DNA of 63,896 nucleotides, the filler included, from Corallochytrium limacisporum Hawaii (Eukaryota > Protista > Pluriformea): the NCBI GenBank assembly GCA_002811645.1. It is 6 parts of 6 records of this genome, joined end to end, with 100 filler letters (N's around TTAATTAATTAA, not from the genome) between each part and the next. Parts side by side here need not be neighbours in the genome. Positions count along the whole stretch, not along the records: positions 22,350 to 45,393 come from PDIP01000058.1; 5 more parts are not named here. One strand, 5' to 3'. Of the stretch, positions 22,350 through 45,681 are shown in pieces (the first letter of the stretch is position 1; each line of letters starts with the position of its first letter). A program made the translations under genes and the position numbers. Under the pieces are notes generated by a model. The model made no database searches. It saw only the letters and a program-made list of their open reading frames with translations, and was not told where the DNA came from.

Positions 22350-24014
22350 GACAACTTCCCCCTCGCCCAGGCTGCGCAGTCCAGCAGCTGGAAGGAGGGA
22401 TTCAATTGGTTCAGCCATACCATGACCCACCCCAATATGGGAGTGCTCAGTGATTCTGACTCCGAGATCGAGATTCTGTACAACAAACACATTGCTGAGG
22501 ACGTACTTGGTCTGCGCGGCTACAGCACCTGGTCCCCCAATTCGGTCCTGTGCGGTCAATACTCCGGCATGATGAACGGGGACGTTTTGACAGCAATGGA
22601 CCGCGTGGGAATAACCAATGCGCTGACTGATAATGCCAACCCTGAGCATAGCTACACTGAAACCACTCGCGCTAACTATGAGCCCTGGATCACCACTGTT
22701 GAGACAAATGGCTATGCTGGCTTCACTCTCATCCCGCGACACCCCACTTTTATTGTCTGGTACGCGGCCACACCGGCTGAGAATCTAGATTTTTGGACCC
22801 AGTGGGGTTACCACTTCGATACTATTGAGGACCTCGTCCAGTATGACCTGGTAAACGTATTAGGCCCCCCCATCATGTCTCTACGGCAGGATCCCTTGAT
22901 GTATCACCAGGCGAACTTGTACACGAACAACATCTCTGGTAAGACGGCCAGTCTTGTGTCTTTCCACGTTGATGGACTGACTCAGGCAATCCATGAGTAT
23001 CTGACCCTGCCCATCCGCTCCTTCAAGCAGGACGACGTGGCCAAAATTTTCCGTCGACGGGCTGCTCTCAACAAGTGCACCCCAGAGGTCATTTTGCAGC
23101 GCGCCGATGACGGCACTATCAACTACGTCCGTGTTCGCACCAGGGCAGACTGTTACGTTCCCATTGAGGGCGTCACCCTACCCACCGCTGTAAATGACGC
23201 ATCAGCAAACGCTGTGCTCTCTGACGACGGTGAGCGGGTACTGATCAATGCCAGTGCGGGCGCAATCTACGAATATGGCTCTACCGAGGGCAGTTCCGGC
23301 GGTGGCGGAGACAACGGCAGCGGTGACGATGACGCCTGCTCTTACAACGAATGGACTTTCAGCCACACCGGCGAAGAGTGTTGGTTCCAGCCAGGCCGGA
23401 CTGACTGTGCCCAGTGCATTGAGGGCGGCTGTCAGTGCGGCGCGGAAAATCATCAAGTCTGCGTGCAGTGCGGTGACAGCGATGCGTGCGGTGTCGTCCA
23501 AGCGTGCATCCCTGACGGTGGCGACAATGGTGGCGACAATGGTGGTGATAACGGAGGCGACAACGGAGGCGGTGACGATGACAGCTGCTCTTACAACGAA
23601 TGGACTCTCAGTCACACCGGTGACGAATGTTGGTTCCAGCCAGGCCGGACTGACTGTGCCCAGTGCATTGAGGGCGGCTGTCAGTGCGGCGCGGAAAATC
23701 ATCAAGTCTGCGTGCAGTGCGGTGACAGCGATGCGTGCGGTGTCGTCCAAGCGTGCATCCCTGACGGTGGCGACAATGGTGGCGACAATGGTGGTGATAA
23801 CGGAGGCGACAACGGAGGTGGTGACGATGGTGGCTGTTCTCATAACGAATGGACCCTTAACCACACTGGTGACGAATGTTGGTTTGATAAGAATTCCAGT
23901 GACTGCGCCGTGTGCAAAGAGGGTGGCTGCCAGTGCGGCGATGACAACCGGCATGCCTGCGTTGAATGTGGAAATGGCGACGCCTGTGCCACTACAGTAG
24001 CTTGTATTCCGTAA
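22350..24014 (+). CDS. agd3: Agd3/CE18-like polysaccharide de-N-acetylase, copy A (5' part lost in gap), with three C-terminal 10-Cys modules
   Basis: Frame is open from the gap edge (DNFPLAQ...FNWFSHTMTH). Agd3-type motifs HTxTH, GMMNGD, TDN, GYAGFTLIPRHPT, LRQDPLMYHQANL. Close paralogue of copy B. Confidence 0.82.
   Translation, partial: DNFPLAQAAQSSSWKEGFNWFSHTMTHPNMGVLSDSDSEIEILYNKHIAEDVLGLRGYSTWSPNSVLCGQYSGMMNGDVLTAMDRVGITNALTDNANPEHSYTETTRANYEPWITTVETNGYAGFTLIPRHPTFIVWYAATPAENLDFWTQWGYHFDTIEDLVQYDLVNVLGPPIMSLRQDPLMYHQANLYTNNISGKTASLVSFHVDGLTQAIHEYLTLPIRSFKQDDVAKIFRRRAALNKCTPEVILQRADDGTINYVRVRTRADCYVPIEGVTLPTAVNDASANAVLSDDGERVLINASAGAIYEYGSTEGSSGGGGDNGSGDDDACSYNEWTFSHTGEECWFQPGRTDCAQCIEGGCQCGAENHQVCVQCGDSDACGVVQACIPDGGDNGGDNGGDNGGDNGGGDDDSCSYNEWTLSHTGDECWFQPGRTDCAQCIEGGCQCGAENHQVCVQCGDSDACGVVQACIPDGGDNGGDNGGDNGGDNGGGDDGGCSHNEWTLNHTGDECWFDKNSSDCAVCKEGGCQCGDDNRHACVECGNGDACATTVACIP
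23337..24011 (+). repeat. Three 249-nt coding repeats: 10-Cys module plus (GGDN)n linker
   Basis: Modules start at 23337, 23586 and 23835. The first two are almost identical in DNA. Confidence 0.93.
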
Positions 24015-26504
24015 AGCGCCGAGTGGTTTTGCAAATGTAGGTAGGTATCCTTCATTACATTCATTCGTTTCATTGTATACAGAAAGCAGTGCCGATTTGG
24101 CTTGCAGGTCCAAAAGCCGTTAAGTTGAGTCATTTGGGTGTGCATCATTCCATCGCACAGCAGTAAACAGATCAGGCCTTTCCTCTTTGAACGAAGACGC
24201 AGCTCAACGTAAGCTCCAGAAACCCTCCGTCACGCAACCATGTACAGCCGGTTCCCAGTAAAGACAAGATAAGCAATCGGCAAGGTGGAAGCTGTGCCCT
24301 CTATGCGCTTTGCACAACCAGGTCTCATCATCATATTGTTTTCGCTTCCTTGGCAGACAGCACAATTTCAGCGGCCCTTGAGATTATTTCAGGGATGATT
24401 TGAATTCCTCATTCACAACAGGGAGGCGTCGGATCCTACTCGCCGCAGAAAGCCACTTCCTATGAAGAGGACAGACTGAACATGGAGAACAGCACCACGG
24501 ATACCAAAACGGCAGTCGTACTTCACTTTGGGACAACACCTCTGCGACTCTTCTCTGACAATTCCCAAGGGCGCTCCTCGGTGTTCTACCAAAATAAATG
24601 TTGATCATCACACTTGGTCACTCTTCCTTAGTTTTCTGTGAGCTGTGACCATGCGAAGCACCATACATGGCAAAATAAGACGCAGAACACAGATGTCAGG
24701 AAACTGACAACTCAGCATTCGACCACTGGGTGCGGTTGGGGAATGAATTGTACTCCTTCCCTGTTGGCTGTCCATCAAATTCCACTCTCAGCTTCAATAT
24801 CTATGGTGTTGGTTTATTGTTGGTGCGAGCAGATTTTGTTTTCGCTCGCTGGGGGCCGGTGATACAATTCATCTATGGCAAGCAGTCGTGGCTACNNNNN
24901 NNNNNNNNNNNNNNNNNNNNNNNNNNNNNNNNNNNNNNNNNNNNNNNNNNNNNNNNNNNNNNNNNNNNNNNNNNNNNNNNNNNNNNNNNNNNNNNNNNNN
25001 NNNNNNNNNNNNNNNNNNNNNNNNNNNNNNNNNNNNNNNNNNNNNNNNNNNNNNNNNNNNNNNNNNNNNNNNNNNNNNNNNNNNNNNNNNNNNNNNNNNN
25101 NNNNNNNNNNNNNNNNNNNNNNNNNNNNNNNNNNNNNNNNNNNNNNNNNNNNNNNNNNNNNNNNNNNNNNNNNNNNNNNNNNNNNNNNNNNNNNNNNNNN
25201 NNNNNNNNNNNNNNNNNNNNNNNNNNNNNNNNNNNNNNNNNNNNNNNNNNNNNNNNNNNNNNNNNNNNNNNNNNNNNNNNNNNNNNNNNNNNNNNNNNNN
25301 NNNNNNNNNNNNNNNNNNNNNNNNNNNNNNNNNNNNNNNNNNNNNNNNNNNGTCGGCATATGCACTTGCGCAGCAGAAAAGCGGGCCGTGCCCCGCGGCC
25401 CGTGGTGAGGAGCACGGCGCACGGGGGAAAACTAAATACGACGATGTACAGTCACACGAGTGTCACATCAGTAAACTTCCTGCAATGTGTAAAGCAAAGA
25501 ATGGCGCCAAAGTAAGCCACGATGGGAAATGAGAAAGAGCCTCTGCTGGTGTACATCCCATTCCCCGCCTCGCATTACAGAGGCCGGGTCTTCTGCGCAT
25601 GCTGTAGTCCAGTGAACGGGGAAAAGTTTATTCTCAGATGCACTCGGTGGCAGATTTGTTTTCTACGATGTACCGGTGCGCATCCAAATCAAGACCCGAT
25701 AAGAAAAGTTTGGAAGAACGGTTGGTTTAGTCAGCGAGTTTGCCAAAGTGTTGGGAGAAGGGCATGTGCCAGGCCGCAGACACTCAAACAAAGCGGAACC
25801 GAACCGATCCGCAGTGGAACAAAGTGCATACCGCAACTCGTCGTGCTCGTTCCTTGTCGACGTCAATTGTGAGTTGTGAACGACACAGCAGGTTTGAAAA
25901 TGTGTGCGGAGAGTGCGCACAGCGCTCCTCACTGGGGACATGGAGCAACCGAAATCGATGAGATGTTCTTCCTTTGCCTAGGCACAGGAGGCAACCCCTA
26001 TTGCACGGTTATGTTCACTCTCTTCGGCCAGAAACGGTGCAGGTTGCGTGTTTTGTGGAATCTGCATTGTGTGGTTTTCAGTGTACGCGTGTGTGTGTAT
26101 GGGCATAGTGAGTCCTACTGGTGTGCGCGCACTTCTTGACCTCACATCGAAAAGCCAGCAGAGAACAGCCCCATGGAAGGGCAGTGCGTGGTGGTGCGGC
26201 AAAGGGGTGCCCGATGATTGGGGTCCGTCGACAGAACAAAAGAGTTTCTGTTCCTTCAATTTGTGTCCGAGAATGTGCTTCAAAGCTTCAAGGTATTTTG
26301 TAGCCTAGCATTGACCCATTACTGATCCGACTTCCCATTGCTGTGGAAACAAGATACGGGCAACTAAAACAAAAGATCTGCTAGTGAAGTTTACGCCCCG
26401 TCCTTGGATCTGCATCAGTTTGCTAAATGAGAAGAATTCTACCAGCATTGTCAACAATGCAAAGCTTCCAGAGCTAGAGAAAGCAACGTAATATCAAAAG
26501 CATC

Positions 26505-29500
26505 ATGTATCGAAACCATTGCCGTGAGCGTCTCGTCGGCTTGATCGCTCTGTTGATGTTCACNNNNNNNNNNNNNNNNNNNNNNNNNNNNNNNNNNNNN
26601 NNNNNNNNNNNNNNNNNNNNNNNNNNNNNNNNNNNNNNNNNNNNNNNNNNNNNNNNNNNNNNNNNNNNNNNNNNNNNNNNNNNNNNNNNNNNNNNNNNNN
26701 NNNNNNNNNNNNNNNNNNNNNNNNNNNNNNNNNNNNNNNNNNNNNNNNNNNNNNNNNNNNNNNNNNNNNNNNNNNNNNNNNNNNNNNNNNNNNNNNNNNN
26801 NNNNNNNNNNNNNNNNNNNNNNNNNNNNNNNNNNNNNNNNNNNNNNNNNNNNNNNNNNNNNNNNNNNNNNNNNNNNNNNNNNNNNNNNNNNNNNNNNNNN
26901 NNNNNNNNNNNNNNNNNNNNNNNNNNNNNNNNNNNNNNNNNNNNNNNNNNNNNNNNNNNNNNNNNNNNNNNNNNNNNNNNNNNNNNNNNNNNNNNNNNNN
27001 NNNNNNNNNNNNNNNNNNNNNNNNNNNNNNNNNNNNNNNNNNNNNNNNNNNNNNNNNNNNNNNNNNNNNNNNNNNNNNNNNNNNNNNNNNNNNNNNNNNN
27101 NNNNNNNNNNNNNNNNNNNNNNNNNNNNNNNNNNNNNNNNNNNNNNNNNNNNNNNNNNNNNNNNNNNNNNNNNNNNNNNNNNNNNNNNNNNNNNNNNNNN
27201 NNNNNNNNNNNNNNNNNNNNNNNNNNNNNNNNNNNNNNNNNNNNNNNNNNNNNNNNNNNNNNNNNNNNNNNNNNNNNNNNNNNNNNNNNNNNNNNNNNNN
27301 NNNNNNNNNNNNNNNNNNNNNNNNNNNNNNNNNNNNNNNNNNNNNNNNNNNNNNNNNNNNNNNNNNNNNNNNNNNNNNNNNNNNNGGCCCTGCAATGGGT
27401 CACGCGCGGGTCGTTTGTGGGAACACGCCAGCTCAACGTGTCGCCACAGGTCGATGATTTCTTCCTCAATGACAACCCTGCGTATGTAGATCATGTCACT
27501 TGGCACCTAGAGTGGCAAAATTCTCACAATTCTGCCTACGGTGATGACATCAGGCTCGACATGGTGTTCAATGGCATGGGCATCACAGATGGTGGTATTG
27601 GCCGGCGCTTTGAGTGGGGTGATGAGTACGATTTGTACGCCAAGGATGTTGATGCATACTCATTGCCTGGTAGTAACAATGATAAGTACACCAGACCTTG
27701 GCCCGAGAACTGGTGGAATAACTCAAGTTTCTGGCAGAGCTGGGTGGACAACTTCCCCCTCGCCCAGGCTGCGCAGTCCAGCAGCTGGAAGGAGGGATTC
27801 AATTGGTTCAGCCATACCATGACCCATGCCAATATGGCGGCACTCAGTGTCTCTGACGCTGAGATAGAGATTCTGTATAACAAACACATTGCTGAGGACG
27901 TACTTGGTCTGCGCGGCTACAGCACCTGGTCCCCCCATTCGGTCCTGTGCGGCCAGTACTCCGGCATGCAGAATGGCGATGTCTTGATGGCAATGGACCG
28001 TCTGGGCGTAAATAATGCGCTCACCGACAACTCTAACTCTAATCACGGCTACACTGCAACAACACGGGCAAACTATGAACCCTGGTTCTCTACTGTTGAG
28101 ACTAATGGGTACGCTGGGCTTACTCTTGTCCCTCGACACGATACCTTTATTTGGTGGGACTCTGCCACGCCTGCTGAAAATGTCGCTGCTTGGAACCAGT
28201 GGGGTTACAACTTTGGTAGTATCGATGACATGGTGTACCATGACCTGGTGAATGTATTAGGACCATTGATTATGTCTCTGCGCCAGGAGCCGTTGATGTA
28301 TCACCAGGCTAATATGAATACCAACAGTATCAATGGTAAGACGGCCAGTCTTGTGTCTTATCACGTTGGTGGGCTAGCAGAGGGCATCCATGAGTATCTG
28401 ACCCTGCCCATCCACTCCTTTAAGCAGGACGATGTGGCTAATATTTTCCGTCGACGGGCTGCTCTCAACAATTGCAAACCTGAAGTGATCTTGCAACGCG
28501 CAGATGATGGCAATGTTATCTACGTCCGCGTCCGCACCAGAGCAACTTGCTACGTTCCTATTGAGGGCATCACCCTACCCGCTGCCGCAGATGACGGATC
28601 AGCGACTGCCGTGCTCACGAACGATGGTGAGCGGGTGTTGATCAGTGCCAGTGCTGGTGTGACCTACACATACGGCGCTATGGACGGTAGTTCCGGTGGT
28701 GGCGGTGACAACGGTGGCGGTGACAACGGTGGCGGTGATAACGGTGGCGATGATGGCGGCGGCTGTTCTTACAACGAATGGACTTTCAGTCACACTGGCG
28801 ACGAGTGTTGGTTCGAGTCAGGACGATATGACTGTGCCGTGTGTATGGAGGGTGGTTGCGGATGCGGCGCAGAAAATCATCAGGTTTGCGTCGAATGTGG
28901 TGATGTTGCTGCCTGCGGTGTTGTCCAAGCGTGTGTCCCTGGCGGAGGTGGCAATGACGGTGACAACGGAGGCGGTGATGGCGGTGATGGCGGTGATGGC
29001 GGTGATGGCGGTGATGGCGGTGATGGCGGTGATGGCGGTGACAACGGAGGCGGTGACGGTGGTGATGGCGGCGACAACGGCGACTGTTCGTACAACAAAT
29101 GGACTCTCAGCCACACTGGCGACGAATGCTGGTTCGAGTCGGGACGGGATGACTGTGCCCTATGCACAAGCGGTGGCTGCGGATGCGGAGCGGAAAACCA
29201 TCAGGTCTGCGTCGAATGTGGTGATGTTGCTGCCTGCGGTGTCGTCCAAGCATGTGTCCCTGGTGGCGGAGGTGACAATGGCGGCGACAATGGCGGCGAC
29301 AATGGAGGTGATAACGGCGGTGACAATGGCGGTGACAATGGAGGTGATAACGGCGGTGACAACGGAGGTGACAACGGAGGTGACAATGGCGGTGACAATG
29401 GCGGTGACAAGGGCGGTGACGGCGGCGACAACGGCGACTGTTCGTACAACGAATGGACTCTCAGCCACACTGGCGACGAATGCTGGTTCGAGTCGGGACG

Positions 29501-29897
29501 GTATGACTGCGCCCTATGCACATACGGAGGCTGCGGATGCGGCGCGGAAAACCATCAGGTCTGCGTCGAATGCGGTGATGTTGCTGCCTGCGGTGTCGTC
29601 CAAGCATGTGTCCCTGGCGGCGGAGGTGACAATGGCGGCGACAATGGCGGCGACAATGATAACGGCGATAATGGCGGTGACAACGGCAGCGACAACGGTG
29701 GCGGTGACAATGGCGACTGTTCGTACAACGAATGGACCCTGAGCCACACCGGCCACGAGTGTTGGTTCGACTCGGACTCAACCGACTGTGCTGTGTGCAA
29801 AGAGGGAGGCTGCCAATGTGGCGATGACAATCGACACACCTGCGTCCTTTGCGGAGATGGCGACGCCTGTGGCACCGTACTAGCCTGTGTACCGTAG
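26505..29897 (+). CDS. agd3: Secreted Agd3/CE18-like polysaccharide de-N-acetylase, copy B (internal gap 26564-27385), with four C-terminal 10-Cys modules
   Basis: Signal-like start MYRNHCRERLVGLIALLMF. After the gap: WVTRGSFVGTRQLNVSPQVDDFFL (Agd3 pattern WxTRG..G.R....Q[IV]DDxFL), FNG.G, FSHTMTH, GMQNGD, PRH, MYHQAN. The DD/HxxxH metal ligands and the catalytic His are all present. Joining across the gap is inferred. Confidence 0.85.
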   Translation: MYRNHCRERLVGLIALLMFXXXXXXXXXXXXXXXXXXXXXXXXXXXXXXXXXXXXXXXXXXXXXXXXXXXXXXXXXXXXXXXXXXXXXXXXXXXXXXXXXXXXXXXXXXXXXXXXXXXXXXXXXXXXXXXXXXXXXXXXXXXXXXXXXXXXXXXXXXXXXXXXXXXXXXXXXXXXXXXXXXXXXXXXXXXXXXXXXXXXXXXXXXXXXXXXXXXXXXXXXXXXXXXXXXXXXXXXXXXXXXXXXXXXXXXXXXXXXXXXXXXXXXXXXXXXXXXXXXXXXXXXXXXXXXXXXXXALQWVTRGSFVGTRQLNVSPQVDDFFLNDNPAYVDHVTWHLEWQNSHNSAYGDDIRLDMVFNGMGITDGGIGRRFEWGDEYDLYAKDVDAYSLPGSNNDKYTRPWPENWWNNSSFWQSWVDNFPLAQAAQSSSWKEGFNWFSHTMTHANMAALSVSDAEIEILYNKHIAEDVLGLRGYSTWSPHSVLCGQYSGMQNGDVLMAMDRLGVNNALTDNSNSNHGYTATTRANYEPWFSTVETNGYAGLTLVPRHDTFIWWDSATPAENVAAWNQWGYNFGSIDDMVYHDLVNVLGPLIMSLRQEPLMYHQANMNTNSINGKTASLVSYHVGGLAEGIHEYLTLPIHSFKQDDVANIFRRRAALNNCKPEVILQRADDGNVIYVRVRTRATCYVPIEGITLPAAADDGSATAVLTNDGERVLISASAGVTYTYGAMDGSSGGGGDNGGGDNGGGDNGGDDGGGCSYNEWTFSHTGDECWFESGRYDCAVCMEGGCGCGAENHQVCVECGDVAACGVVQACVPGGGGNDGDNGGGDGGDGGDGGDGGDGGDGGDGGDNGGGDGGDGGDNGDCSYNKWTLSHTGDECWFESGRDDCALCTSGGCGCGAENHQVCVECGDVAACGVVQACVPGGGGDNGGDNGGDNGGDNGGDNGGDNGGDNGGDNGGDNGGDNGGDNGGDKGGDGGDNGDCSYNEWTLSHTGDECWFESGRYDCALCTYGGCGCGAENHQVCVECGDVAACGVVQACVPGGGGDNGGDNGGDNDNGDNGGDNGSDNGGGDNGDCSYNEWTLSHTGHECWFDSDSTDCAVCKEGGCQCGDDNRHTCVLCGDGDACGTVLACVP
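28690..29894 (+). repeat. Four 10-Cys modules separated by variable (GGD)n 9-nt and (GGDN)n 12-nt minisatellite linkers
   Basis: Modules start at 28764, 29085, 29439 and 29718. ggcggtgat and ggcggtgacaat arrays lie between them. Confidence 0.93.
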
Positions 29898-32750
29898 GAC
29901 TCGGTTTGCTGCGCGAACGCCAGTCCCTTTCCATCGATCTCGAAAAACTGCATACGTCCCTTTCAACAGCAGCAGCCAATAAGGGGACCATTCAAACACA
30001 AAGGAGCCCATCTAACCACCGGCAACACTGATGAAGTCACTTAACGGACAAAGACTCCAAATGGAGTCAACCGCTTAATTGAACGCAATCTTGAAGGTGT
30101 CACTCAGAGTGAAAACGGATGAGGAGGCCAAAGGCACCAAATGCTTCAGAAAGGAAAAGGAATGGAAGAATATGCACACAACCAAAACGGTTTGTGTTCT
30201 TCCCTCAATCGCGCATCGTTCTCTCCCACATCGCCTCTGGGAAAACCCTTCCCCCCCCCCCCCCNNNNNNNNNNNNNNNNNNNNNNNNNNNNNNNNNNNN
30301 NNNNNNNNNNNNNNNNNNNNNNNNNNNNNNNNNNNNNNNNNNNNNNNNNNNNNNNNNNNNNNNNNNNNNNNNNNNNNNNNNNNNNNNNNNNNNNNNNNNN
30401 NNNNNNNNNNNNNNNNNNNNNNNNNNNNNNNNNNNNNNNNNNNNNNNNNNNNNNNNNNNNNNNNNNNNNNNNNNNNNNNNCCCCCCCACCCCCGGGTCCC
30501 CCTTCCGCGAGGGCAGTGGAGCGGCAAAGGCGGGTTTGGGCCTCCAAACGAAAAGGGGCCGCGGGCCCCGTAGCCAACTGGGAAATCTCTCTCTCTCTCT
30601 CGCTCTCTCGCTCTCCCTCTCCCCCCGGGGGGGGGGGAGGTGGGGGGTTCCAGAAAAGAAAGAAAAAGGGTGAAAGATTGGACACATTCCGCTTAAGCAG
30701 GCCCTGGCAAGGGAACAAAATAAAAAATGCAAAAAAAAAGATAAAAAAAAACCGGAAGAGAAAGGGACTCCCCCCGGCCCGCCGGGATAGAGAAAACCAC
30801 AAGGGAACTGCGGGCGAGTGAGAGAGCAGAGAGATTCTTCCAATCAAAGAAAAGCATCAAAATTAAAACAAAACAAAACAAAAAAAAAAGAGAAGAAAAG
30901 AGAAAACACGCAAAATACCCAAAACACCCTGCCTAATTCCTCCGCAACGGCAACTTTCTTTGGTTTGGTTCCCCGGGTACCGAGAAGCCCCGCCGGAGAG
31001 GGGTGGGGGTACCAGGCAGAGAGCGAGCGACAGGGAGAGAGAGAGGGGAGGGGGAGCGGGGGAGGGGGTGGCGGAAGCAGAGAGGGAAGCGGGGCCTGGT
31101 CAAGTTCGGCGGGTTTGACTTTGCAAAAGATTTTCTTCACCCCAAAGGGCAGCTCGGAAGTGGGGGCGCTATTGAAGGCCTGACATGTCTTTTGAGGTGA
31201 TGAACTACCTCGCAGTTGGTACAAAACAGCTGCCGGGAAACTGAAAGATTGGCGTTTGTGTTATTTCAGCAAAGGAAAAGATGTCTCTTTATGTTTAAGC
31301 ATTGATGGGTACTTTTGTGAGTGTGGTTTTGGACTTTGGGCAGCATCAGAACGTTCAACGGGATTCAACATCCAAATGTCGTTTTGATTGATGATGATGG
31401 CAATGAAATTTAGAATGGTTCAAAACGCATCTCTGCGTCACGATATCCAAAAAGAGGACGCCACCCTCGTCATCAAGAGCAGAGGATTAAAGAGCGATAC
31501 GGGGATAGGGAATTCTATGCGCAGGATGATGTGTCAAGGATGTCTTGTAGTGAATGAATATATAACTAACAAACTATCAGGATTATGAACAAGGAACGGA
31601 CAATGGACGTTTTAACTACGGACTGGCGAACAGACTTCCACTGTTTGTGCAAATTTACCATCGCGCGCGGAAAAGTGGCAACATCATCAACTACAGCAAA
31701 AACTGGTTGTCTCCCTGGTGTCCTATCATTCTTATCTCTTCTACGAACGTTAAAAACGGTTCATCAATCTACATCCACCCACGCATACTCATCTCTACAC
31801 ATTTCCGTGTCTCCCGCGCATCTGTCCACTCAATAGGGATTGGTGAGTCAATGTTCAATAGCTTGGTATGTACTTGTCCAGAGAGTTAGGATGTGATTAG
31901 AAAGGGCCTTGTAATACACTACAAACGTTGCTTGCAGTGACTCCATGTAACGCTGGTATCCCATGGCACATGTACAAGCATAGCCCGTCCGTACGCGGAA
32001 AAAGCCGGACACCACGACAACAACCATGCTCAGATAGGTGTTCGCATATCCGGTACGAAATTCACTGCTCACTGTCCTCAAGTTTGTTGGTCATGCGAGC
32101 GGATTTAGACCTCATCGCCTGGCCCGCTTTGAGTCCAATCAACGCAAAGCCTATTCATGAGGATCCTACACATTGTTGCAGCATCACAGCTGGGTTTTTC
32201 GAGGCCGTCCAAGCGCCGGTCAAACCCGACCAGAAGTGCGTCCTCCCGGGTCCCTGACGGGTCAGACTCTCCCCTAGCGAGTTTCCTTTCAATACATTTA
32301 GTATACTAAACCCGGCTTACGGCAGTCCGACCCCCCTCTACCCCTTTCCCCTCCTGTCCCCCCCCTCCTTCCCGCCCCCCTCTTCACTTCCGACTCTCAC
32401 CTAACCCCTAACCCCCCCAACCACGCCCCATTGGCAGTTAATTTGGGTAAGCACCCACCTTCGTCGACGACCTTTTCTGGAGCAGTAGGTAAAACTGCCT
32501 GATCGGGAGGGGGTCTGGCCGCCTTCCGCCCGAACCCTCCCCCCACCCCCCGGGCGGGCGCGAAAAGGGCAGAAAAAGGGGGGAGGGGGAAGGGGAAAGT
32601 GCGCAGCCACCCGCAGTGGGTTGTGAACTTCACGTCCGTACTACCACTTCGTTCCGGATAGTCGAGGGACAATTAAGCAAACCGCGTCGTTTGAACCAAT
32701 GAAGCAGCCACAGGACTTCAAAATTCTTTTCACTGCAATGGATGATCACA

Positions 32751-32858: not shown

Positions 32859-35423
32859 ATGATCTACGGATTCCTATTCGTGGTGGCGCTGAGCGCCATG
32901 CTTGGGACAGAGTGCAAAGCAGAAGGATGCGCTCTCAACCAGTGGACCAGCCTCGCCAGTGGTGCTCCTTGCTACTTCGATCACGGCCTGGACTGTGCCA
33001 CCTGTGCCCCGGGCGGATGCCAGTGTGGTCCTGGTAAGGGTAACGTCTGCGTTGAGTGTGGAAAGAGCGAACATTGTGATCATGAGCCAGTGTGCTTCCC
33101 TGGTCTTGAAGAAACTTCCACATCAGCCAGCACTGATCAGCAGACTACTACATCATTCACATCCACCAGTACAAATGAGCAGACAACTACCACTAGCGGT
33201 GCTACCTCCACATCTGGCAGCACTGATGAACAGACCACTACCGCAGAGGGGGACAGCTGTACCTTGAACAGCTGGACGGTTTCCACCTCTGGAACACCCT
33301 GCTGGGACAACAGTGGCCAGGACTGCGCCACCTGTGCTGTCGGTGGATGCCAGTGTGGCAGCGGTAAGGCTGCTCTGTGCGTTGAATGTGGCACAGACCA
33401 TTGCCATACTGAGAATCCCTGCGTTGATGGCTTCATCTCCACCACGCCAACCTCCACGTCAACCAGCACCAATGAGCAGACCACGACAACGTCAGGTGCG
33501 ACCTCCACATCTTCTGGCTCTGACCAACAGACCACTACCGCAGATGAGGATAGCTGTACCTTGAACAGCTGGACGGTTTCCACCTCTGGAACACCCTGCT
33601 GGGACAACAGTGGCCAGGACTGCGCCACCTGTGCTGCCGGTGGCTGCCAGTGTGGCAGCGGCAGGACTGTACTGTGTGTTGAATGTGGCACCGATCATTG
33701 TCAAACTGAGGATGCCTGCGTTGATGGTACCATTTTCCCCGCACCCGCCTCGTCCTCTGATCCTCAGGAAGCCAGCCCACCGGACGGCCCCTTCGACCCT
33801 CCCTCCCTGTATGAGGGCGGCACCAAGTCTTTGGCTGACGACTACGGCGGCACCCGAGTGCGTTCCCTGCCTTCCTACAAGAACTGGCATATCAACTACG
33901 CAAATTGGAACCACGTCGACCCTGCTCTGCATCAGTTTCACCTGGTTATCGTGCACCATACGTCATTCTGGGGATCCGAAGCTGAGATGAGCGTGGTGTT
34001 GGAACAAATTCAGGTGGGTGCTGACGGTGTAAAGGGTACTGAGGACGATGTTGCTGTACTTATGTACGTATCCATCAGTGAACAGGCGCCCGCCAGTCCT
34101 AAGGCTGCAAACGGTCATCTAATCGCAGGCGATGGTTCCGGACCCGTGCACTTTGCAAATGGTGAGCGCCAGTACGCCCACGCTGGCGTTGCTCCGTTCT
34201 ACATTGACAAGGAACCCGACGGCAACATCGACACCCACGGCACCTGGGGCGGCTACTACATTGATTGCCGAGACCAACAGTGGCGCTCGATCATTCTTGA
34301 CGAGGTTAATCATTGGGTCAATGACCTAGGCTTCGATGGAATCTTTCTGGACGCCCCAGAGGTTGGAGACCCGTGGCACGGCCGCGGTTGGGCTGCAGAG
34401 GGTGTCCTGGACATCGTGCGTGACTTGGACAATGCCTTCCCTTCTTCTCTGTTCCTGCTGAACCGTGGCCTATTCTACTTTGTACCCCACTATAGCTACC
34501 AGTTTGATTTCAATCCCGCAAAGTATGTCGACTTTGTGCTGTTTGAGTCCTTTTATGCAGGCTCTGACTACGGCAGCAACGAGTACAAGAAGTCGCCTTA
34601 CTACCTTGAGAACCGGAATTTCATGCTGCCAAAGGTCCTCGCCGAGTTCTCCCGCCCAGATACCTACGCGGTGGTTCTGCAGCTGGACTACTGGAAAACC
34701 CCAAGCAATGCGCCCAACACAGCCATCTTTGATGACTACATGGATGATGTGTCAAAGTTTGGCACTCTGCCATTCATCACGGACATTCAGTTGAGCAAGA
34801 GCTCCAATGTGGCGGCCGAGTCGCTGCCCTCTGACACTGTGGGCCCCACCTGGTCCAACACCTCAAACGGCGTTTCTCACTGCAACAGCCAGGCTGCATT
34901 CTTCCACTATAAAGGCGCCCCGCAGAATGCCGGACAACCTGCCCGTACCGGCGTTCAGAATTTAATCCCCAGCGGCGACAATGGCTTGACGGTGCAGTGG
35001 GATCTCGCTATTGATCAGACCCGTCCGCTTCGTTACAACGTTTACGTGTCGCGTGCCGACAGTAACATGAACTTTAGTAGCAGCAATCAGGTCGTCAACG
35101 ATAGCAAATCGGACAGCCATACTTTGGACAGTGCGTCTGTCGACACCTTGTCGGGCGGTATGACACTGGTGTTCCCAGACATTGGGTCCGGTATGCCCGC
35201 TAACTACAAGGGTACTGACTTCACATGTGGTGGGCGAACTTTCCTTCAAGGTGAGGAGGTCTACCCCTTCGAGTGGTCCCTATTCAACTTGCCCTCTGGC
35301 ACTTATCATGTGGTCATCCGTGCCGAGGACGGTACCTCCGGTGCTACTGTAACTAGTGGCCGCCGCGGTTACAACGGTGGCATCGAAGAGGAGAATACTG
35401 TCACTCGCAGCATCACCATCTAA
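32859..35423 (+). CDS. Secreted modular glycoside hydrolase: three 10-Cys modules with Ser/Thr linkers, PelA-hydrolase/GH114-GH166-like (beta/alpha) barrel, FN3-like C-terminal domain
   Basis: 854 aa with signal peptide. W.INY, F.LVIV, VLMYVSISE, WGGYYIDCRDQQWR, GFDGIFLD, LLNRG, FVLFES, VLQLDY follow the PelA/endo-alpha-1,4-polygalactosaminidase pattern. C-terminal TVQWDLAIDQ..LRYNVY..VIRAED..GIEEENT. Confidence 0.8.
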   Translation: MIYGFLFVVALSAMLGTECKAEGCALNQWTSLASGAPCYFDHGLDCATCAPGGCQCGPGKGNVCVECGKSEHCDHEPVCFPGLEETSTSASTDQQTTTSFTSTSTNEQTTTTSGATSTSGSTDEQTTTAEGDSCTLNSWTVSTSGTPCWDNSGQDCATCAVGGCQCGSGKAALCVECGTDHCHTENPCVDGFISTTPTSTSTSTNEQTTTTSGATSTSSGSDQQTTTADEDSCTLNSWTVSTSGTPCWDNSGQDCATCAAGGCQCGSGRTVLCVECGTDHCQTEDACVDGTIFPAPASSSDPQEASPPDGPFDPPSLYEGGTKSLADDYGGTRVRSLPSYKNWHINYANWNHVDPALHQFHLVIVHHTSFWGSEAEMSVVLEQIQVGADGVKGTEDDVAVLMYVSISEQAPASPKAANGHLIAGDGSGPVHFANGERQYAHAGVAPFYIDKEPDGNIDTHGTWGGYYIDCRDQQWRSIILDEVNHWVNDLGFDGIFLDAPEVGDPWHGRGWAAEGVLDIVRDLDNAFPSSLFLLNRGLFYFVPHYSYQFDFNPAKYVDFVLFESFYAGSDYGSNEYKKSPYYLENRNFMLPKVLAEFSRPDTYAVVLQLDYWKTPSNAPNTAIFDDYMDDVSKFGTLPFITDIQLSKSSNVAAESLPSDTVGPTWSNTSNGVSHCNSQAAFFHYKGAPQNAGQPARTGVQNLIPSGDNGLTVQWDLAIDQTRPLRYNVYVSRADSNMNFSSSNQVVNDSKSDSHTLDSASVDTLSGGMTLVFPDIGSGMPANYKGTDFTCGGRTFLQGEEVYPFEWSLFNLPSGTYHVVIRAEDGTSGATVTSGRRGYNGGIEEENTVTRSITI
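32928..33720 (+). repeat. Three 10-Cys modules (32928, 33258, 33555) with mucin-like T/S linkers; the last two form a 297-nt near-identical duplication
   Basis: CTLNSWTVSTSGTPCWDNSGQDCATCA.GGCQCGSG occurs twice, plus one diverged N-terminal copy. Confidence 0.9.
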
Positions 35424-35871: not shown

Positions 35872-36549
35872 TCAATAGTACCGAGGGGTTGAATGAGACG
35901 ACTCTTCAAAAGAAGGTGAGGATTTCTTGACATGCTCACGATTGATTGAAGACACCCGGGTGTCAGGGCCATGCTCACCGGTACAGCATGAAACGTAGCC
36001 TTGCTTGATCAAACACTTCAGACTCATGATACCAGCCAATGCCATGTACGCGGAAACGAAAATGTAGTAATAGAAGCCAACGTTGATGACATCTTGTACT
36101 TCATTCTCCGGGTAGTCCACTTTACCCAGCAAAACTGTTGCAGTGACGACACTAACGATGGCAAAGACGCTAGCATCCAAGCCCAGCAAATGAATGGGGG
36201 CACACCGTACCGATCCAATGAAGCACAAGAGGAGATAACCACCCATAAGACCAATAGCAAGGAATGAGGCGTACTCGGATCCTCGGAAAATGTCACACGA
36301 GTCTTTGTCGAGGAATGGCACTCTTTGTCCATCTAGATCGACCGTACAATCATTATGGAAGCTAAAAGTATCACTGTCGCACTGGTTTGAAGCATTACAG
36401 ACACTGAAATAGAGCCATCTGTAAGCCACAAGGAGCAGACCATCGTTGGTATTAACGGTAACGACGATCATAAAGGGGATCGCCTGGGGAAGGATCAGCA
36501 AGACCACAGATCCGCTCAGCAGACCCAGTAAATGCTTTTCGGTGAGCAT
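35872..36549 (-). CDS. Four-TM claudin/PMP22-like membrane protein
   Basis: Four hydrophobic segments. Large first loop with WLYFSVC...C...C...C. Tail CC motif. First ATG at 36549; TATAAAA on the minus strand at 36649-36655. Confidence 0.6.
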   Translation of the reverse strand: MLTEKHLLGLLSGSVVLLILPQAIPFMIVVTVNTNDGLLLVAYRWLYFSVCNASNQCDSDTFSFHNDCTVDLDGQRVPFLDKDSCDIFRGSEYASFLAIGLMGGYLLLCFIGSVRCAPIHLLGLDASVFAIVSVVTATVLLGKVDYPENEVQDVINVGFYYYIFVSAYMALAGIMSLKCLIKQGYVSCCTGEHGPDTRVSSINREHVKKSSPSFEESSHSTPRYY

Positions 36550-37798
36550 ATTGTCAAGTTTGGAAACGTTGCCAATCGGATGAATTTCGGGAGGATTCGA
36601 GCTCACGATTTCAGTCTAGAAGCCTTCTTGTGGCCAAGATGCAAAGTCTTTTATATGTGACCAACTGGCAAACAGAGAAATCTCGTCACAATATGGTATG
36701 CATCGTGCACCTTTGGTCCGGTTATCCTTCTTCTTTGTCGGGATTTCAGACCTAACCAGAACGGAGGCCAGTCAAATAACACAGCACTTCTAACCCTACT
36801 GATTCGACATGAAACGAAGACATTTGGCATCAGCTAAGCAACAAGGAAGTGTTCACGCGATTTGTGGACCATCTATTCTTCCCTTTTTTGGCCGGTCCAT
36901 TTCCTGTCGTGGCAGATGACGTGCAATGCGAATGACAAAAGAATATGACTCCAGCAAACCGCAGGTAGCCCCGATGACCGTTGGCAAAGTTCAGAAAGGA
37001 AACGGATATGGATGATGCCCGCTGATGACGGATTCATGACCGCTCTCTACGTAACTGTGGAACCGTCGATTTCCCCTCAATATCCCTCCCTCCCTTGGTG
37101 TGAGAGAAAACCAAGACTGAACAAGTGCTGTTGGAAACTTACGTCTTTACTGTGTTCCCCTTCATTTTTTCCCTTTTAGTTTCCTTGTGCTGGAAGTTTT
37201 GTTGATGATGGGGTGGGGTCGATGCTCGTCATTGGCCCCCCGCCTGCGCATCATCGTTGCGTAATGTGGTTCGGAGCGGCGCGTCAGGGAAAGCGACGGA
37301 GATGCGGTTGAGGGGGGCGGCAATCTGTGTCTTCGCTTTGGAGTGATCTGGTTGCTCTTCCGGACACGCATTCGAGTTTGCTCCTCCCATTCAGCAGAGA
37401 GGCAATGTCTTACACGAACCAGGAAGGAGCACAAGATTCATTGGGTGCTTCACCTGCCAAAGAAAGAGCAATGTCCTTCCAGGACGACCAAATGCCACCA
37501 AAGATCCTTACATGCTACACATACCAGCGGGACAGAAAATCATCAGAATAGCTGGTAAGTGCCCCCCCCCCAGGACACACAACAATGGGTCACATTTTCT
37601 TGCGCGCAAGATGTATGATCGAGCTCACTCAGACTCGCAAGGGAGAGGACAAATAGGCACGCATCTGATCCATACCTGATTAACCACGATTTATTTCAGA
37701 ATGCAAGTGAAGTTGTCCCCTGACGAGAGCTGGTGAACACGGAGATCCGATGGAACTTACTGTGCCACCGTACTTTGAGAGGTATCCAGCCAGCGCAG

Positions 37799-39712
37799 TT
37801 AACGCTGGGACTTTATTCTGTGCTTTAAGAATAGTTGGAAGTAGACAACTATGTTAGCTTGCTTAAATATTTTGCCCAGTGTTGTGAGGTCGCTGTCGCG
37901 TACAGTCGGGGCCTCTATATTGGCATGCATCTCGTCTGCCAAGAATTGCACTACCGTCTCATGGCAGTTCACTACGGCGAAATGCAGTGCAGTCCAACCG
38001 TCATTGTCTTTGGCATCAACATCGGCTGACATGCTCTCCGCAAAGTACCGCACCACCGTCTCATGGCCTCTCTGTGCCGCATAATGCAATGGGGTCTGAC
38101 CTTCTTCGTCCTTGACCTCAACATTGGCATGCATCTCCCCTGCCAAGAACTGCACTACCGTTTCATGGCCGTGCCGTGCGGCATAATGCAGTGGGGTCCG
38201 ACCAATCATGTCCTTGACCTCAACATTGACATGCATCTCGCCTACCAGCAATTGCACTACCGCCTCATGGCCGCCCTGCGCGGCCAAATGCAGTGGGGTT
38301 AGAGGATGCTGCGACACGGAATCCACGTTGCAATGCATATCCATTGCCAAGTACTGGACTAGTGTTTCATGTCCGGAAAATGCGGCATGGTGGAGTGGAG
38401 TTAACCCTTCTTTGTCCTTGGACTCAACATCGACAGACATCACCTCCACAAAGTACCGCACCAGCGTCAAATGGCCATACATTGCGGCCAAGTGCAGTGG
38501 GGTCATACCGCCTTTGTCCTTGGTCTCCACACTGGCACGCAACTCGTCTGCCAAATACCACACTATCGTCTCATGGCCTGTTATCACAGCATAGTGCAGC
38601 GGTGTCCTACCAATCGTGTTCATGGCCTCCACATTGGCATGCATCGCGCCCGTCAACAACTGCACTACCGTCTTTTGGCCGTACGCCGCGGCATAATGCA
38701 GTGGGGTCTCACCGTCTTTGCTCTTGGCCTCCACATTGGCGCACATCTCGCCTGCCAACACCTGCACTACCATCTCATGACCTTTTACTGCGGAATAAAA
38801 CAAAGGGGTCCGAGCCTCTTTGTCCTTGGCCTCCACATTGGCGCGCATCTCGCCTGCCAACAATTGCACTACCGTTGTTTGGCCGCACGCTGCGGCAGCG
38901 TGCAGTGGGGTCTGACCGTTTTTGTCCTTGGCCTCCACATTGGCATGCATTGCGCCTGCCAGCAACTGCACTACCGCCTCATGACCTTCAGCTGCGGCAT
39001 AGTGCAGTGGGGTCCGACTCTCATTGTCCTGGGCCTCCACATTGGCGCACATCTCGCCCGCCAACAACTGCACTACTATCTTATGACCCGGCTTTGCGGC
39101 AAAGTGCAGTGGGGTCCGACTATCTTTGTCCTTGGCCTCCACATTAGCATGCATCTTGCCTGCCAGCAACTGTACTATAGTCTCATGACCTTCAAGTGCA
39201 GCATGATACAGTGGGGTCCGACCCTTCATGTCCGTGGCCTCAACATTGACATGCATCTTGCCCGCCAACAACTGCACAACAGTCCCATGACCTTTCGCTG
39301 CGGCACAATGCAGTGGGGTCCAACCGTCCTTGTCCTTGGCCTCTACATTGGCATGCATCTTGCCCGCCAACAACTGCACTACCGTCTCATGCCCGTTCCG
39401 TGCGGCTATATGCAGCGGAGTACGATGCCGTTGAAAGCGGACATCCGTCCCGTAGGTTTGTGCAAGCATTTTCACGCCTGCCATGTCACCGCCTTTACAG
39501 GCCAATTCATACTCTTCCATATTCATTACGGTGTTCATCCACAGAGATGTCGTCTTCAAATCGTTTTCGAAACTCAAGCTAAGATTTCTGCGGGTCGGGG
39601 TTGTTGCGTGTTCAGAAAGATCTACTCTGCTGCCAGTCGCACGACACTCTTTTGGTTTGAAGCAACCGAGAAAAAACCGGGTGTCTTTCACCATGGCCTG
39701 TGTCAATTGCAT
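37799..39712 (-). CDS. Ankyrin-repeat protein with about 15 34-aa repeats
   Basis: 15 TPLH/TPLY-type units of the form G.TPLH.AA..GHE.VVQ.LAG.M.ANVEAKD, with a 102-nt DNA period. Start uncertain. Confidence 0.93.
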   Translation of the reverse strand: MQLTQAMVKDTRFFLGCFKPKECRATGSRVDLSEHATTPTRRNLSLSFENDLKTTSLWMNTVMNMEEYELACKGGDMAGVKMLAQTYGTDVRFQRHRTPLHIAARNGHETVVQLLAGKMHANVEAKDKDGWTPLHCAAAKGHGTVVQLLAGKMHVNVEATDMKGRTPLYHAALEGHETIVQLLAGKMHANVEAKDKDSRTPLHFAAKPGHKIVVQLLAGEMCANVEAQDNESRTPLHYAAAEGHEAVVQLLAGAMHANVEAKDKNGQTPLHAAAACGQTTVVQLLAGEMRANVEAKDKEARTPLFYSAVKGHEMVVQVLAGEMCANVEAKSKDGETPLHYAAAYGQKTVVQLLTGAMHANVEAMNTIGRTPLHYAVITGHETIVWYLADELRASVETKDKGGMTPLHLAAMYGHLTLVRYFVEVMSVDVESKDKEGLTPLHHAAFSGHETLVQYLAMDMHCNVDSVSQHPLTPLHLAAQGGHEAVVQLLVGEMHVNVEVKDMIGRTPLHYAARHGHETVVQFLAGEMHANVEVKDEEGQTPLHYAAQRGHETVVRYFAESMSADVDAKDNDGWTALHFAVVNCHETVVQFLADEMHANIEAPTVRDSDLTTLGKIFKQANIVVYFQLFLKHRIKSQR

Positions 39713-39847
39713 CGGAAAGCCATAACACGCATACCAGTCTCCTGTGAGAGTTTTCTGTACCCAATTTCAGAGCATTAAATACCAGTCCCTGAGTATATGG
39801 CAATGCAGTGCACAAAAGCAGTTGATCCGTAGCCTGTCCAAGCCAAA

Positions 39848-39964
<117 letters not shown>

Positions 39965-40807
39965 AAAATCGTTGATGCATCTACCACCCCATGTCAGCTC
40001 TTTATCAAAGACGCTCAACGCAGACAGAAAAGAGATACAATACTTAGGACGATTGCGTTTGACATGGACCGAGTAGTTTGGTTTGGTCATTCTCAAAGCA
40101 AAAGTGTCGAATTGAAAAAGCCTTTCAGTTTTGGTTCCTACCCTGCGGCAACCACTCACCAGCGCTGAGCACTGTGTGGAGAAAAAGGGAATATAAGGGA
40201 ACCATGGGAGAAGCAGGACACCAGTGGGTATAATGTCCTCTGGGACCTTGCGTCTGGGGGATGTGTCACTAAGAAAACAACGCGGAGAAGGAAACAGGAG
40301 GGGGGGGAGAAGAGGGGTCATGGGGCGGGCAGGCTCGATCTTCGGGCGCTCTCGTAAAGGACACTGCTGGACATGGGCCGAGCTCAAAAATCCAAAGCTA
40401 TGCACTCTTGAGCTACGATCTTTCTATCTTAGTCAGTAAGAGCCCATTTTTACTTGCTTTCTGAATTCTTGGTCTCGTTACAGCCTTCTGAATGAAAATT
40501 CGAGCTCCCCTGCACTGTGACCTGTTCTTCGTCCTCGCCTCGCTGATGTTCATCCAGCGGCTCCGATGTTACTTTAGCACATAACCACTAGATCTGATAA
40601 GTCACTGAATCTACAGAACTCTTTTCTATGAACTCTTTTCTATTTCTGTCTCACGGTATTCTAGCTAGGAAAAGTATTTAATGTAGGATGCTTTTGTCAG
40701 GTATGATCTGATCCTCGTATTTGGTTATCTTCAAGAACCTTTGCGTCCATCCAGATCGCGTTGATGCATCCCCACGATCTAAGTCATTGAAAGGAAATCA
40801 CTACACC

Positions 40808-44597: not shown

Positions 44598-45681
44598 TAT
44601 TTCCACAGGTTGGTTTTGGAACAAGTTCTTTGAATACGTGATTCTAAGGCTTTCAGTGGCAAACTCGCTCAGAGCAAGGTAATGAACATACGATCAGGTC
44701 AATGATCAACAAAACTCTTGAAGATCAGAGATCCTTCTTATAGCCGAATGTGCAAATTTCACTTCGTTGTACATTCTTGCGATTCACGATCGTCAGCTGA
44801 GTCCTCTGCCATGTGTATGTTGTGACAGGGACCGCCCTTTGAAAGGCTGCACTGCAGAAGGAACGCCATCGCAATGGCTACCGACGAACATGTTGCTAAC
44901 ATCACAAAGAATAAAGTTTATTTGATTTGCCTCACAGATGCTCTTCAAATAAAGTAACCGAGTCCTGAGATGGACCCTATCTCTCGACGACTTTGCCCAT
45001 TGGGATTGCAGTCCACGCGTCAAACGGTTCCTGCCTTCCCCTCCGCCCCATGGCGCGACCATGGCTTATTACCATTCCTGGAAATTCGTATTAATGGATA
45101 GAGGAAGCCATTGCACAAATCGCGCCGGACTGTGGACTAGCCGCTGGCGCCAAGCGGACACTTCCACCCCTCCCAATTCAGTACCCAAAGTACCGACCGA
45201 AACGGGGAGGAGGTCCTGGCAAGAGGATTTCGCCAGCCGAGAAATTGGGTTCTGTTCCTCCTCTTCCGGCCGCCGCCCTCCCGTCTCATACAAGTACTAT
45301 CGTCTGAGTTGAATGTATACTCCGTATCCAACCAAAATTTTCGTTCGAAAATATATACCGGATCGTGATTTATATGATTATTTATTCGATTCANNNNNNN
45401 NNNNNNNNNNNNNNNNNNNNNNNNNNNNNNNNNNNNNTTAATTAATTAANNNNNNNNNNNNNNNNNNNNNNNNNNNNNNNNNNNNNNNNNNNNATCTCCC
45501 TAACCCAAAGGTTCTACGTAGTCCCTGAAGCCGACGCATTCTGCCATCGTCGCTTTGGCCGGGCCATGAATCCAGCACACACAATGCGGTGATATTTTGT
45601 ATTGGAATAGTTCTTGTATAAGTTAGAAACGGTTGAAGACCAAAGCATTCTCAGTTTCACGGATCTGTACCCGTACGATGG

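Follow-up and report, generated by a model that had tools for sequence, protein, structure and literature searches.

The window examined here, a stretch of 63,896 nucleotides from Corallochytrium limacisporum Hawaii (GenBank assembly GCA_002811645.1), contains two genes, referred to as copies A and B, that are well supported as Agd3-type CE18 deacetylases with an intact visible catalytic set, as judged by comparison with solved and curated members of the family. The two genes are tandem, intronless paralogues and both end in a series of modules with ten Cys residues. Taken as a whole, they are read as encoding secreted CE18 de-N-acetylases in tandem whose Cys modules accompany an action on an extracellular polymer rich in N-acetylgalactosamine (GalNAc), a reading to which a probability of about 0.75 is assigned. 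The usable piece that was analysed comprises positions 22350-45393 (about 23 kb, from record PDIP01000058.1) and is interrupted by runs of N at 24896-25351, 26564-27385 and 30265-30480. The features of the two genes are as follows, with the motifs CM1 to CM4 aligned to those of Agd3 from A. fumigatus (PDB 6NWZ):

22350 to 24014, + strand: copy A, an Agd3-type (CE18) deacetylase gene cut by the edge of the piece, with only its 3' two thirds present
26505 to 26563, + strand: beginning of copy B up to the gap, 19 codons read as MYRNHCRERLVGLIALLMF, with the first in-frame ATG as start codon, 9 codons after a stop
26564 to 27385, no strand: assembly gap, written as 822 N, that hides the N-terminal domain of copy B; bridging contigs give 549 letters
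27387 to 28700, + strand: part of copy B with CM1-CM4, matched by Pfam Agd3_CE and by 6nwz_A
27447 to 27458, + strand: CM1 of copy B, QVDD, which aligns with QIDD of 6nwz
27813 to 27827 (copy B) and 22416 to 22430 (copy A), + strand: CM2, HTMTH, which aligns with HTFTH of 6nwz
28128 to 28139 (copy B, VPRH) and 22731 to 22742 (copy A, IPRH), + strand: CM3, which aligns with NPRW of 6nwz
28296 to 28313 (copy B) and 22899 to 22916 (copy A), + strand: CM4, MYHQAN, which aligns with MFHQAN of 6nwz
23337 to 23513, 23586 to 23762 and 23835 to 24011, + strand: three 10-Cys modules of copy A on GGDN linkers
28764 to 28940, 29085 to 29261, 29439 to 29615 and 29718 to 29894, + strand: four 10-Cys modules of copy B on GGDN or GGD linkers, followed by the stop

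Both copies match the Pfam family Agd3_CE (PF25115) with an E value of 2.7e-41 and 142.2 bits (cut-off 27.6), the match covering profile positions 126-365 in copy A and 29-365 in copy B. Residues 235-677 of 6nwz_A, the chain of the solved Agd3 structure, further align with copy B (E 4.3e-24); adding 122 to the chain numbering gives the numbering of Agd3. The Agd3 residues D377 and D378, H510 and H514, R613, M666 and H668 have identical counterparts throughout in copy B. In Agd3, D377 is the catalytic base, D378, H510 and H514 form the metal triad, R613 (CM3) coordinates the base, and CM4 contributes both M666, which lines the active site, and H668, which is the catalytic acid; mutating any of these residues abolished activity (PMC7229062). 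The DD, HxxxH, R and M-x-H residues of the Corallochytrium genes are, by this alignment and these roles, true equivalents of those in Agd3, which bears out a sequence-only reading of the same DNA that had assigned both genes to the Agd3/CE18 deacetylases. That reading had placed QVDD, HTMTH and MYHQAN exactly where they are found, and the PRH motif that it listed is present as VPRH at 28128-28139. CM1 and CM2 of copy B are 120 residues apart, and a distance of more than 100 residues between these motifs sets CE18 apart from CE4 (PMC7229062).

The visible part of copy A consists of the CE domain from just before CM2, the C-terminal beta domain and the three Cys modules, with a stop codon at 24012-24014. 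Its reading frame is open from the edge of the piece at 22350, and it carries all of the motifs from HTMTH onward, as had been observed before; its CM1 falls outside the piece, beyond that edge, and is not a true absence. The frame of copy B is open from 27387, immediately after the gap, to the stop at 29895-29897, and the ATG at 26505 precedes the gap. The visible open frames amount to 554 codons in copy A and 836 codons in copy B. The two copies share 79% amino acid identity, and their DNA is 81.5% identical over 980 nt (18.5% differing) with short stretches of full identity. A further gap at 24896-25351 sits between the copies and affects neither reading frame.

The gap within copy B was addressed with Logan contigs from three public runs, which were aligned to 25352-28760. 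Two of the runs (X1 and X2) are DNA from one sample, and the third (X3) comes from another study and is of a type that is only guessed as RNA. In each of X1 and X2 a 731-nt contig covers 26473-26563 and 27386-27476 and has 549 letters in between, and a 2243-nt contig in X3 bridges 26564-27385 likewise with 549 letters. The true size of the gap is 549 nt, or 183 codons, and not 822. Since 549 and 822 are both multiples of three, the ATG at 26505 is in frame with the CE domain of copy B under either length, and the bridge, judged by its length, keeps the frame. With a gap of 549 nt the Trp of the WVTRG motif of copy B becomes residue 207, which corrects an earlier placement of this residue near 298, and the corresponding residues in the two nearest homologues are 216 and 208. 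This agreement in N-terminal length, together with the upstream stop, supports the ATG at 26505 as the start. The residues that follow it, MYRNHCRERLVGLIALLMF, look like the beginning of a signal peptide, and a hydrophobic leader also opens the Corallochytrium homologues of copy B. If the hidden 183 codons are open, the data support a full length of 1039 amino acids (aa) for copy B.

The unitig that bridges the gap spans the ATG, the hidden N-terminal domain and QVDD (to 27476), and its depth is about twice that of its flanks, as is the case for other segments that are 100% identical between copies A and B. The unitig is probably common to the two copies, which would explain the gaps left by the assembler. 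The double depth over 27386-27476 also suggests that copy A would hold an intact CM1. The X3 contig is a variant with 48 substitutions at 27478-27670; its indels (+3, -3 and, inside 8 nt, three deletions of one letter each) leave it in frame overall. Upstream of about 26456 one contig departs into other sequence, probably the 5' flank of copy A. Were this so, the identity between copies A and B would run from some 50 nt ahead of the ATG as far as 27476 and would point to recent gene conversion. Elsewhere, the X1 and X2 contigs exit copy B within the GGDN linker at 28701-28734 into the start of another module (...NGGCTLNEW), and there is a 3-nt length variant at 28715-28717; paralogues with the same linker evidently confuse assembly at this point.

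The hidden N-terminal part of copy B amounts to 203 aa including the signal peptide, a length equal to that of the Corallochytrium homologues. This length, with a partial profile match in the homologues, makes it plausible that a CBM87 domain lies within the gap, as the sequence-only reading had proposed. In Agd3, CBM87 is the N-terminal alpha/beta/alpha domain (residues 141-364, seven strands), with W292 and W344 as binding aromatics. The N-terminal domains of the Corallochytrium homologues match the fungal and bacterial ones in hhalign with a probability of 79.5% and an E value of 1.5e-5 over only 59 columns. The length and this alignment fit the proposal, but the Pfam model of CBM87 (PF25116) has no match in the Corallochytrium homologues at E values up to 1. 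A global hhalign of the N-terminal regions that had given 99% was discounted because the conserved LQH..WxTRG..QVDD tail drove the score, and the comparison was rerun without the tail.

The extra Cys modules on Gly/Asp/Asn linkers, which had been noticed earlier in both genes, number three in copy A and four in copy B, and they are absent from fungal Agd3, as the sequence-only reading had stated. Ten copies of the module within the piece (those of copies A and B and three in G1, a neighbouring gene described below) align over 59 residues with 10 invariant Cys. Tandem repeats are seen with a period of 249 nt over modules 1-2 of copy A and 354 nt over modules 1-3 of copy B. The internal modules are near-identical repeats and the last module of copy A pairs with the last of copy B, and the number of modules therefore seems to change by unequal crossing-over.

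An exhaustive search of 1.84 billion representative proteins with a profile built from the ten copies identified 152 proteins at E <= 1e-3 and 35 at E <= 1e-10. Carriers in Corallochytrium are two GH114 proteins (Clim_evm79s22 and Clim_evm7s29), two CE18-like proteins (Clim_evm8s7 and Clim_evm18s50), a purple acid phosphatase (Clim_evm9s170), a member of the family of G1 (Clim_evm1s97) and three proteins without a recognised catalytic domain. Linkers of the GGDDN type join the modules in other Corallochytrium carriers too, as in the GH114 protein Clim_evm79s22. Carriers in animals are extracellular proteins of amphioxus, abalone and an annelid, in which the module is accompanied by Fz/Ig/trypsin, VWD/C8/TIL, D8C, EGF, HYR, F5/8 type C or galactosyltransferase domains, and marine metagenome fragments carry it as well.

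An AlphaFold (AF2) model of the module from an alignment of 112 sequences is confident, with a pLDDT of 88 and a pTM of 0.72. Two columns of this alignment are both Cys in 77 of the modules and both non-Cys in the other 35, and are never mixed; modules of the type found in the piece lack this covarying pair and have a first-and-last Cys pair instead. Such a swap is the pattern expected of one relocated disulfide, which argues for a real domain with five disulfides. Pfam searches with single modules and with all 112 gave no significant family match, and comparison of the module with PDB sequence profiles gave no match. Searches with the model returned a best E value of 5 or worse from Foldseek against the PDB and no Z >= 2 from VIA-align run wide, and nothing was found in the ESM Atlas either by shape (TM below 0.5) or by features. 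Identification of the module as a PSI or TNFR-type repeat was considered and rejected, as no significant match was obtained. Like PSI and TNFR-type repeats the module is small, extracellular and rich in disulfides, and its CxxC...GC.C stretch loosely recalls PSI, but its Cys count and spacing are unlike those of either, and only one of the 112 modules has a weak match to Pfam PSI (E 0.043). The 10-Cys module family is apparently undescribed, and the proteins to which it is attached indicate that it is likely a glycan-binding or matrix-anchoring extracellular module.

The nearest proteins to the two copies are the EukProt entries of C. limacisporum Clim_evm76s215 (52% identity) and Clim_evm17s46 (44%). 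Further homologues in C. limacisporum are Clim_evm8s7 (30%) and Clim_evm18s50 (44% to copy B), and the four identities indicate that these proteins are paralogues of the copies, not the genes themselves. Ahead of WVTRG, all four are as long as copy B. Clim_evm8s7 and Clim_evm18s50 have a Cys module after the CE domain, like copies A and B, whereas Clim_evm76s215 and Clim_evm17s46 have a Ser/Thr-rich stalk and a hydrophobic or transmembrane tail in place of the Cys modules. Unlike copies A and B, none of the four homologues has three or four modules. In the gene model of Clim_evm18s50, CM1 and CM2 are followed by a Cys module and a transmembrane tail, and CM3 and CM4 are missing, which indicates either an error of the model or a paralogue that is truncated and inactive.

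After the Corallochytrium proteins, the next closest sequences are Agd3 orthologues of Sordariomycetes at 26-28% identity. Homologues on genome contigs from Polyangia, Kofleriaceae and one cyanobacterium are 21-28% identical, and 80 metagenome loci, mostly of the fungal type, are all about 30% identical or less over long matches. Two unrooted trees were made, a careful one of 14 rows and a quick one of 46 rows, from bacterial homologues on genome contigs, metagenome loci and four named fungal sequences, a thin named sampling, and the trees came with long-branch warnings. Copies A and B come out as sisters in these trees (99/99), and the pair joins three Corallochytrium proteins in a clade with 100% support on a long stem of 2.2 changes per column; this clade is separate from the fungal-type clade (34 rows) and from the bacterial group and is nested in neither. 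A CE18 tree had been suggested as a means of deciding between vertical and horizontal origin; it does resolve a distinct, long-stemmed Corallochytrium clade but, being unrooted and subject to long branches, does not decide the origin.

Downstream of copy B are two genes, G1 and G2, that belong to one family of glycosidase-like proteins, and their features are as follows:

32859 to 35423, + strand: G1, 854 aa, with a signal peptide, three 10-Cys modules, a glycosidase-like domain and a beta-rich tail
32928 to 33104, 33258 to 33431 and 33555 to 33728, + strand: the three modules of G1, on Thr/Ser-rich linkers
34329 (GFDGIFLD) and 34539 (LFESFY), + strand: G1 motifs with the candidate catalytic Asp and Glu, respectively
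40808 to 42553, + strand: G2, a secreted glycosidase-like protein of 581 aa, of the G1 family and without Cys modules

G1 and G2 are 43% identical in the glycosidase-like domain, and from profile and model comparisons they look like glycosidases of the GH114/GH191/PelA type. The match of G2 to Pfam GH114 has an E value of 3.7e-5 and 23.5 bits, under the cut-off of 27, and an hhalign comparison of the G1/G2 family with the GH114 profile gives 93% over 46 columns around GFDGIFxD. By language-model features the family is nearest to GH114/TM1410 clusters (score 0.77), a lead and no more. An AF2 model of G2 (pLDDT 60) has GH168, TmGH191, the PelA hydrolase and Env-GH191 as its best Foldseek matches (E 1e-8 to 1e-6), and comparison of G2 with PDB sequences gave no match. 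With Ega3 (GH114), TmGH191, Env-GH191 and the hydrolase domain of PelA (GH166), G1 and G2 appear to share a (beta/alpha)8 fold, and their DGxFxD strand motif could supply an Asp nucleophile, while an invariant Glu further on could serve as acid/base. Differences are that G1 and G2 score under the Pfam GH114 cut-off, contain large insertions and extend at the C-terminus by about 200 beta-rich aa. GH114, GH191, GH166 and GH135 are known alpha-galactosaminidase families that act on galactosaminogalactan (GAG) and Pel (PMC12054363), and through the resemblance of G1 and G2 to such families the neighbourhood points to a polymer of galactosamine (GalN) or GalNAc.

Members of the G1/G2 family were found in Corallochytrium, in one diatom transcriptome record and in a few metagenome proteins, and G1 and G2 themselves are in the protein collection from EukProt only. 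The diatom record (CAMPEP_0194124860 of MMETSP0150, Chaetoceros debilis) is 40% identical to G2 and has two N-terminal 10-Cys modules; it may represent a true member of both families in stramenopiles, or else contamination of the culture.

Between G1 and G2, on the - strand at 37799-39712, is an ankyrin-repeat gene for a protein of 637 aa with about 15 repeats and a DNA period of 102 nt; a match to Pfam HTH_upst_double_PIN (E 1e-24) is recorded for the same protein, with 39767-40405 upstream. A (TG)58 microsatellite is located at 39849-39964. An open reading frame (ORF) of 520 aa on the - strand at 43062-44624 has a start resembling a signal peptide, a Ser/Thr-rich middle and no Pfam match, and its residues 243-344 weakly match (E 1e-3) the aerolysin-type module of the zebrafish natterin-like protein 4ZNO, so its product may be a secreted beta-pore-forming protein. 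Another ORF on the - strand, at 35872-36606, encodes 244 aa with several hydrophobic stretches and no family match, and is possibly a small multi-pass membrane protein. No tRNA genes were found in 22350-45393.

In the proposed mechanism, each deacetylase would have five parts in the order signal peptide, N-terminal domain of about 180 aa, CE18 barrel, small beta domain and Cys modules. In the barrel, which is predicted to carry out metal-dependent de-N-acetylation, an Asp and two His would bind the metal, an Arg would hold the Asp that serves as base, and a His would serve as acid. The enzymes would act on a GAG- or Pel-type extracellular polymer rich in GalNAc, which would become cationic and sticky on deacetylation. 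The Cys modules, each with five putative disulfides and joined by acidic Gly/Asp/Asn linkers, may anchor the enzyme, whether in the wall, in the matrix or on the polymer, and the GH114/GH191-like neighbours G1 and G2 may trim the same polymer. The same modules also occur on GH114 and GH114-like glycosidases and on other secreted Corallochytrium enzymes. We infer the substrate, the role of the modules and the identity of the polymer as the organism's own, and we favour a GalNAc-type polymer at the surface of the cell itself as the target.

Several points weigh against this account. Activity and substrate are argued from sequence comparison, and expression would have to be read from X3, the RNA nature of which is a guess. 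Both copies have their N-terminal domain hidden in gaps. The model of G2 is of low confidence (pLDDT 60) and its GH114 match is below the cut-off. The role of the module is deduced solely from which proteins carry it. There is no synthase (of the Gtb3 or PelF type), glycosyltransferase, epimerase or GH135 in 22350-45393, where only two CE18 genes and two distant GH114-like genes were found, which falls short of a complete GAG-type cluster.

A serious rival keeps the enzymes and changes their purpose, in that they would break down foreign GalNAc-rich polymers, such as Pel-like or GAG-like biofilm matrix or mucus glycans, for feeding or for clearing competitors. This degradative role is possible, if doubtful. 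The piece holds only modifying and cleaving enzymes with no synthase or epimerase, and the genes of these families, among them at least six CE18-like ones and several of the GH114 type, have multiplied and lie scattered, as is usual for secreted digestive enzymes. Moreover, GH114 enzymes of the Ega3 type favour deacetylated stretches, so a deacetylase and a hydrolase could form a catabolic pair (PMC12054363). The characterised fungal and bacterial members (Agd3, Ega3 and PelA), however, sit in biosynthetic systems, and the modules and the membrane or GPI-like tails on the paralogues suggest retention at the cell's own surface.

Alternatively, the CE18 fold could have been kept for another substrate, such as chitin or chitosan, another N-acetylated wall glycan or a glycoprotein glycan, in which case the likeness to the GAG system would hold at the level of the family only. 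This is unlikely, even though identity to the Agd3-type fungal enzymes is only 26-28%, the long stem (2.2) sets the clade apart from the fungal and bacterial ones, and the CBM87 binding features are hidden in the copies with no match to the Pfam CBM87 model in their homologues. The neighbours and the partners that share the module are of the GH114 type, for which the known substrates are GalN/GalNAc polymers, and the M666 equivalent and all four CM motifs are retained. That one or both copies are a pseudogene or an assembly artefact of a collapsed repeat is highly improbable: gaps do interrupt both genes, the double-depth unitigs show copies that the assembler left unseparated, and the X3 contig mixes copy B flanks with the 48 differences at 27478-27670, but frames of 554 and 836 codons are open with every visible catalytic residue kept, the copies stay in frame despite 18.5% DNA divergence, and the indels of the variant contig, like the length of the bridge, come to multiples of three.

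Read as deacetylases of a GalNAc-type polymer at the cell surface, the proteins are close in their catalytic machinery to A. fumigatus Agd3, the founding member of CE18 (PDB 6NWZ; PMC7229062). The base Asp, the Asp-His-His triad, the Arg of CM3 and the Met-x-His of CM4 are identical, the long spacing between CM1 and CM2 is shared, and both are secreted. The Corallochytrium proteins differ from Agd3 in having no Ser-rich N-terminal region, in an N-terminal domain of about 180 aa (hidden here) rather than 224, and in their three or four C-terminal 10-Cys modules, of which fungal and bacterial homologues have none. The fungal GAG cluster consists of five genes, uge3, gtb3, agd3, ega3 and sph3, whereas the tandem pair lies beside GH114-like genes without the synthase, epimerase and GH135 of that cluster. 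The host differs as well, being a unicellular holozoan and not a member of the Pezizomycotina. The GAG cluster has been described from Pezizomycotina and, in a single basidiomycete that acquired it by transfer, Trichosporon only, with its origin left open (PMC4817252), and homologues of Agd3 have been described as fungal and bacterial (PMC7229062). No paper linking Corallochytrium with GAG, Agd3, CE18 or GH114 was found in the library that was searched. What is new here is the lineage, the domain architecture and the apparently undescribed module family; the kind of enzyme is already known.

The 549-nt gap result corrects two gapped gene models, and the presence of a catalytically intact, expanded CE18 family beside GH114-type genes in a holozoan protist widens the distribution of CE18/Agd3. 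The third, deeply separate CE18 clade provides material for asking how the system originated. If the 10-Cys module binds glycans, it would make a new family of the CBM kind and would mark an extracellular matrix biology older than animals. More speculatively, Corallochytrium, a marine unicellular relative of animals, might produce or reshape a cationic exopolysaccharide matrix of GalN/GalNAc, like GAG or Pel, with enzymes that are targeted by a new glycan- or matrix-binding module of five disulfides, one that animals might have kept in matrix proteins of the lectin, mucin and VWD types, and this module might then be part of a pre-animal extracellular matrix toolkit.

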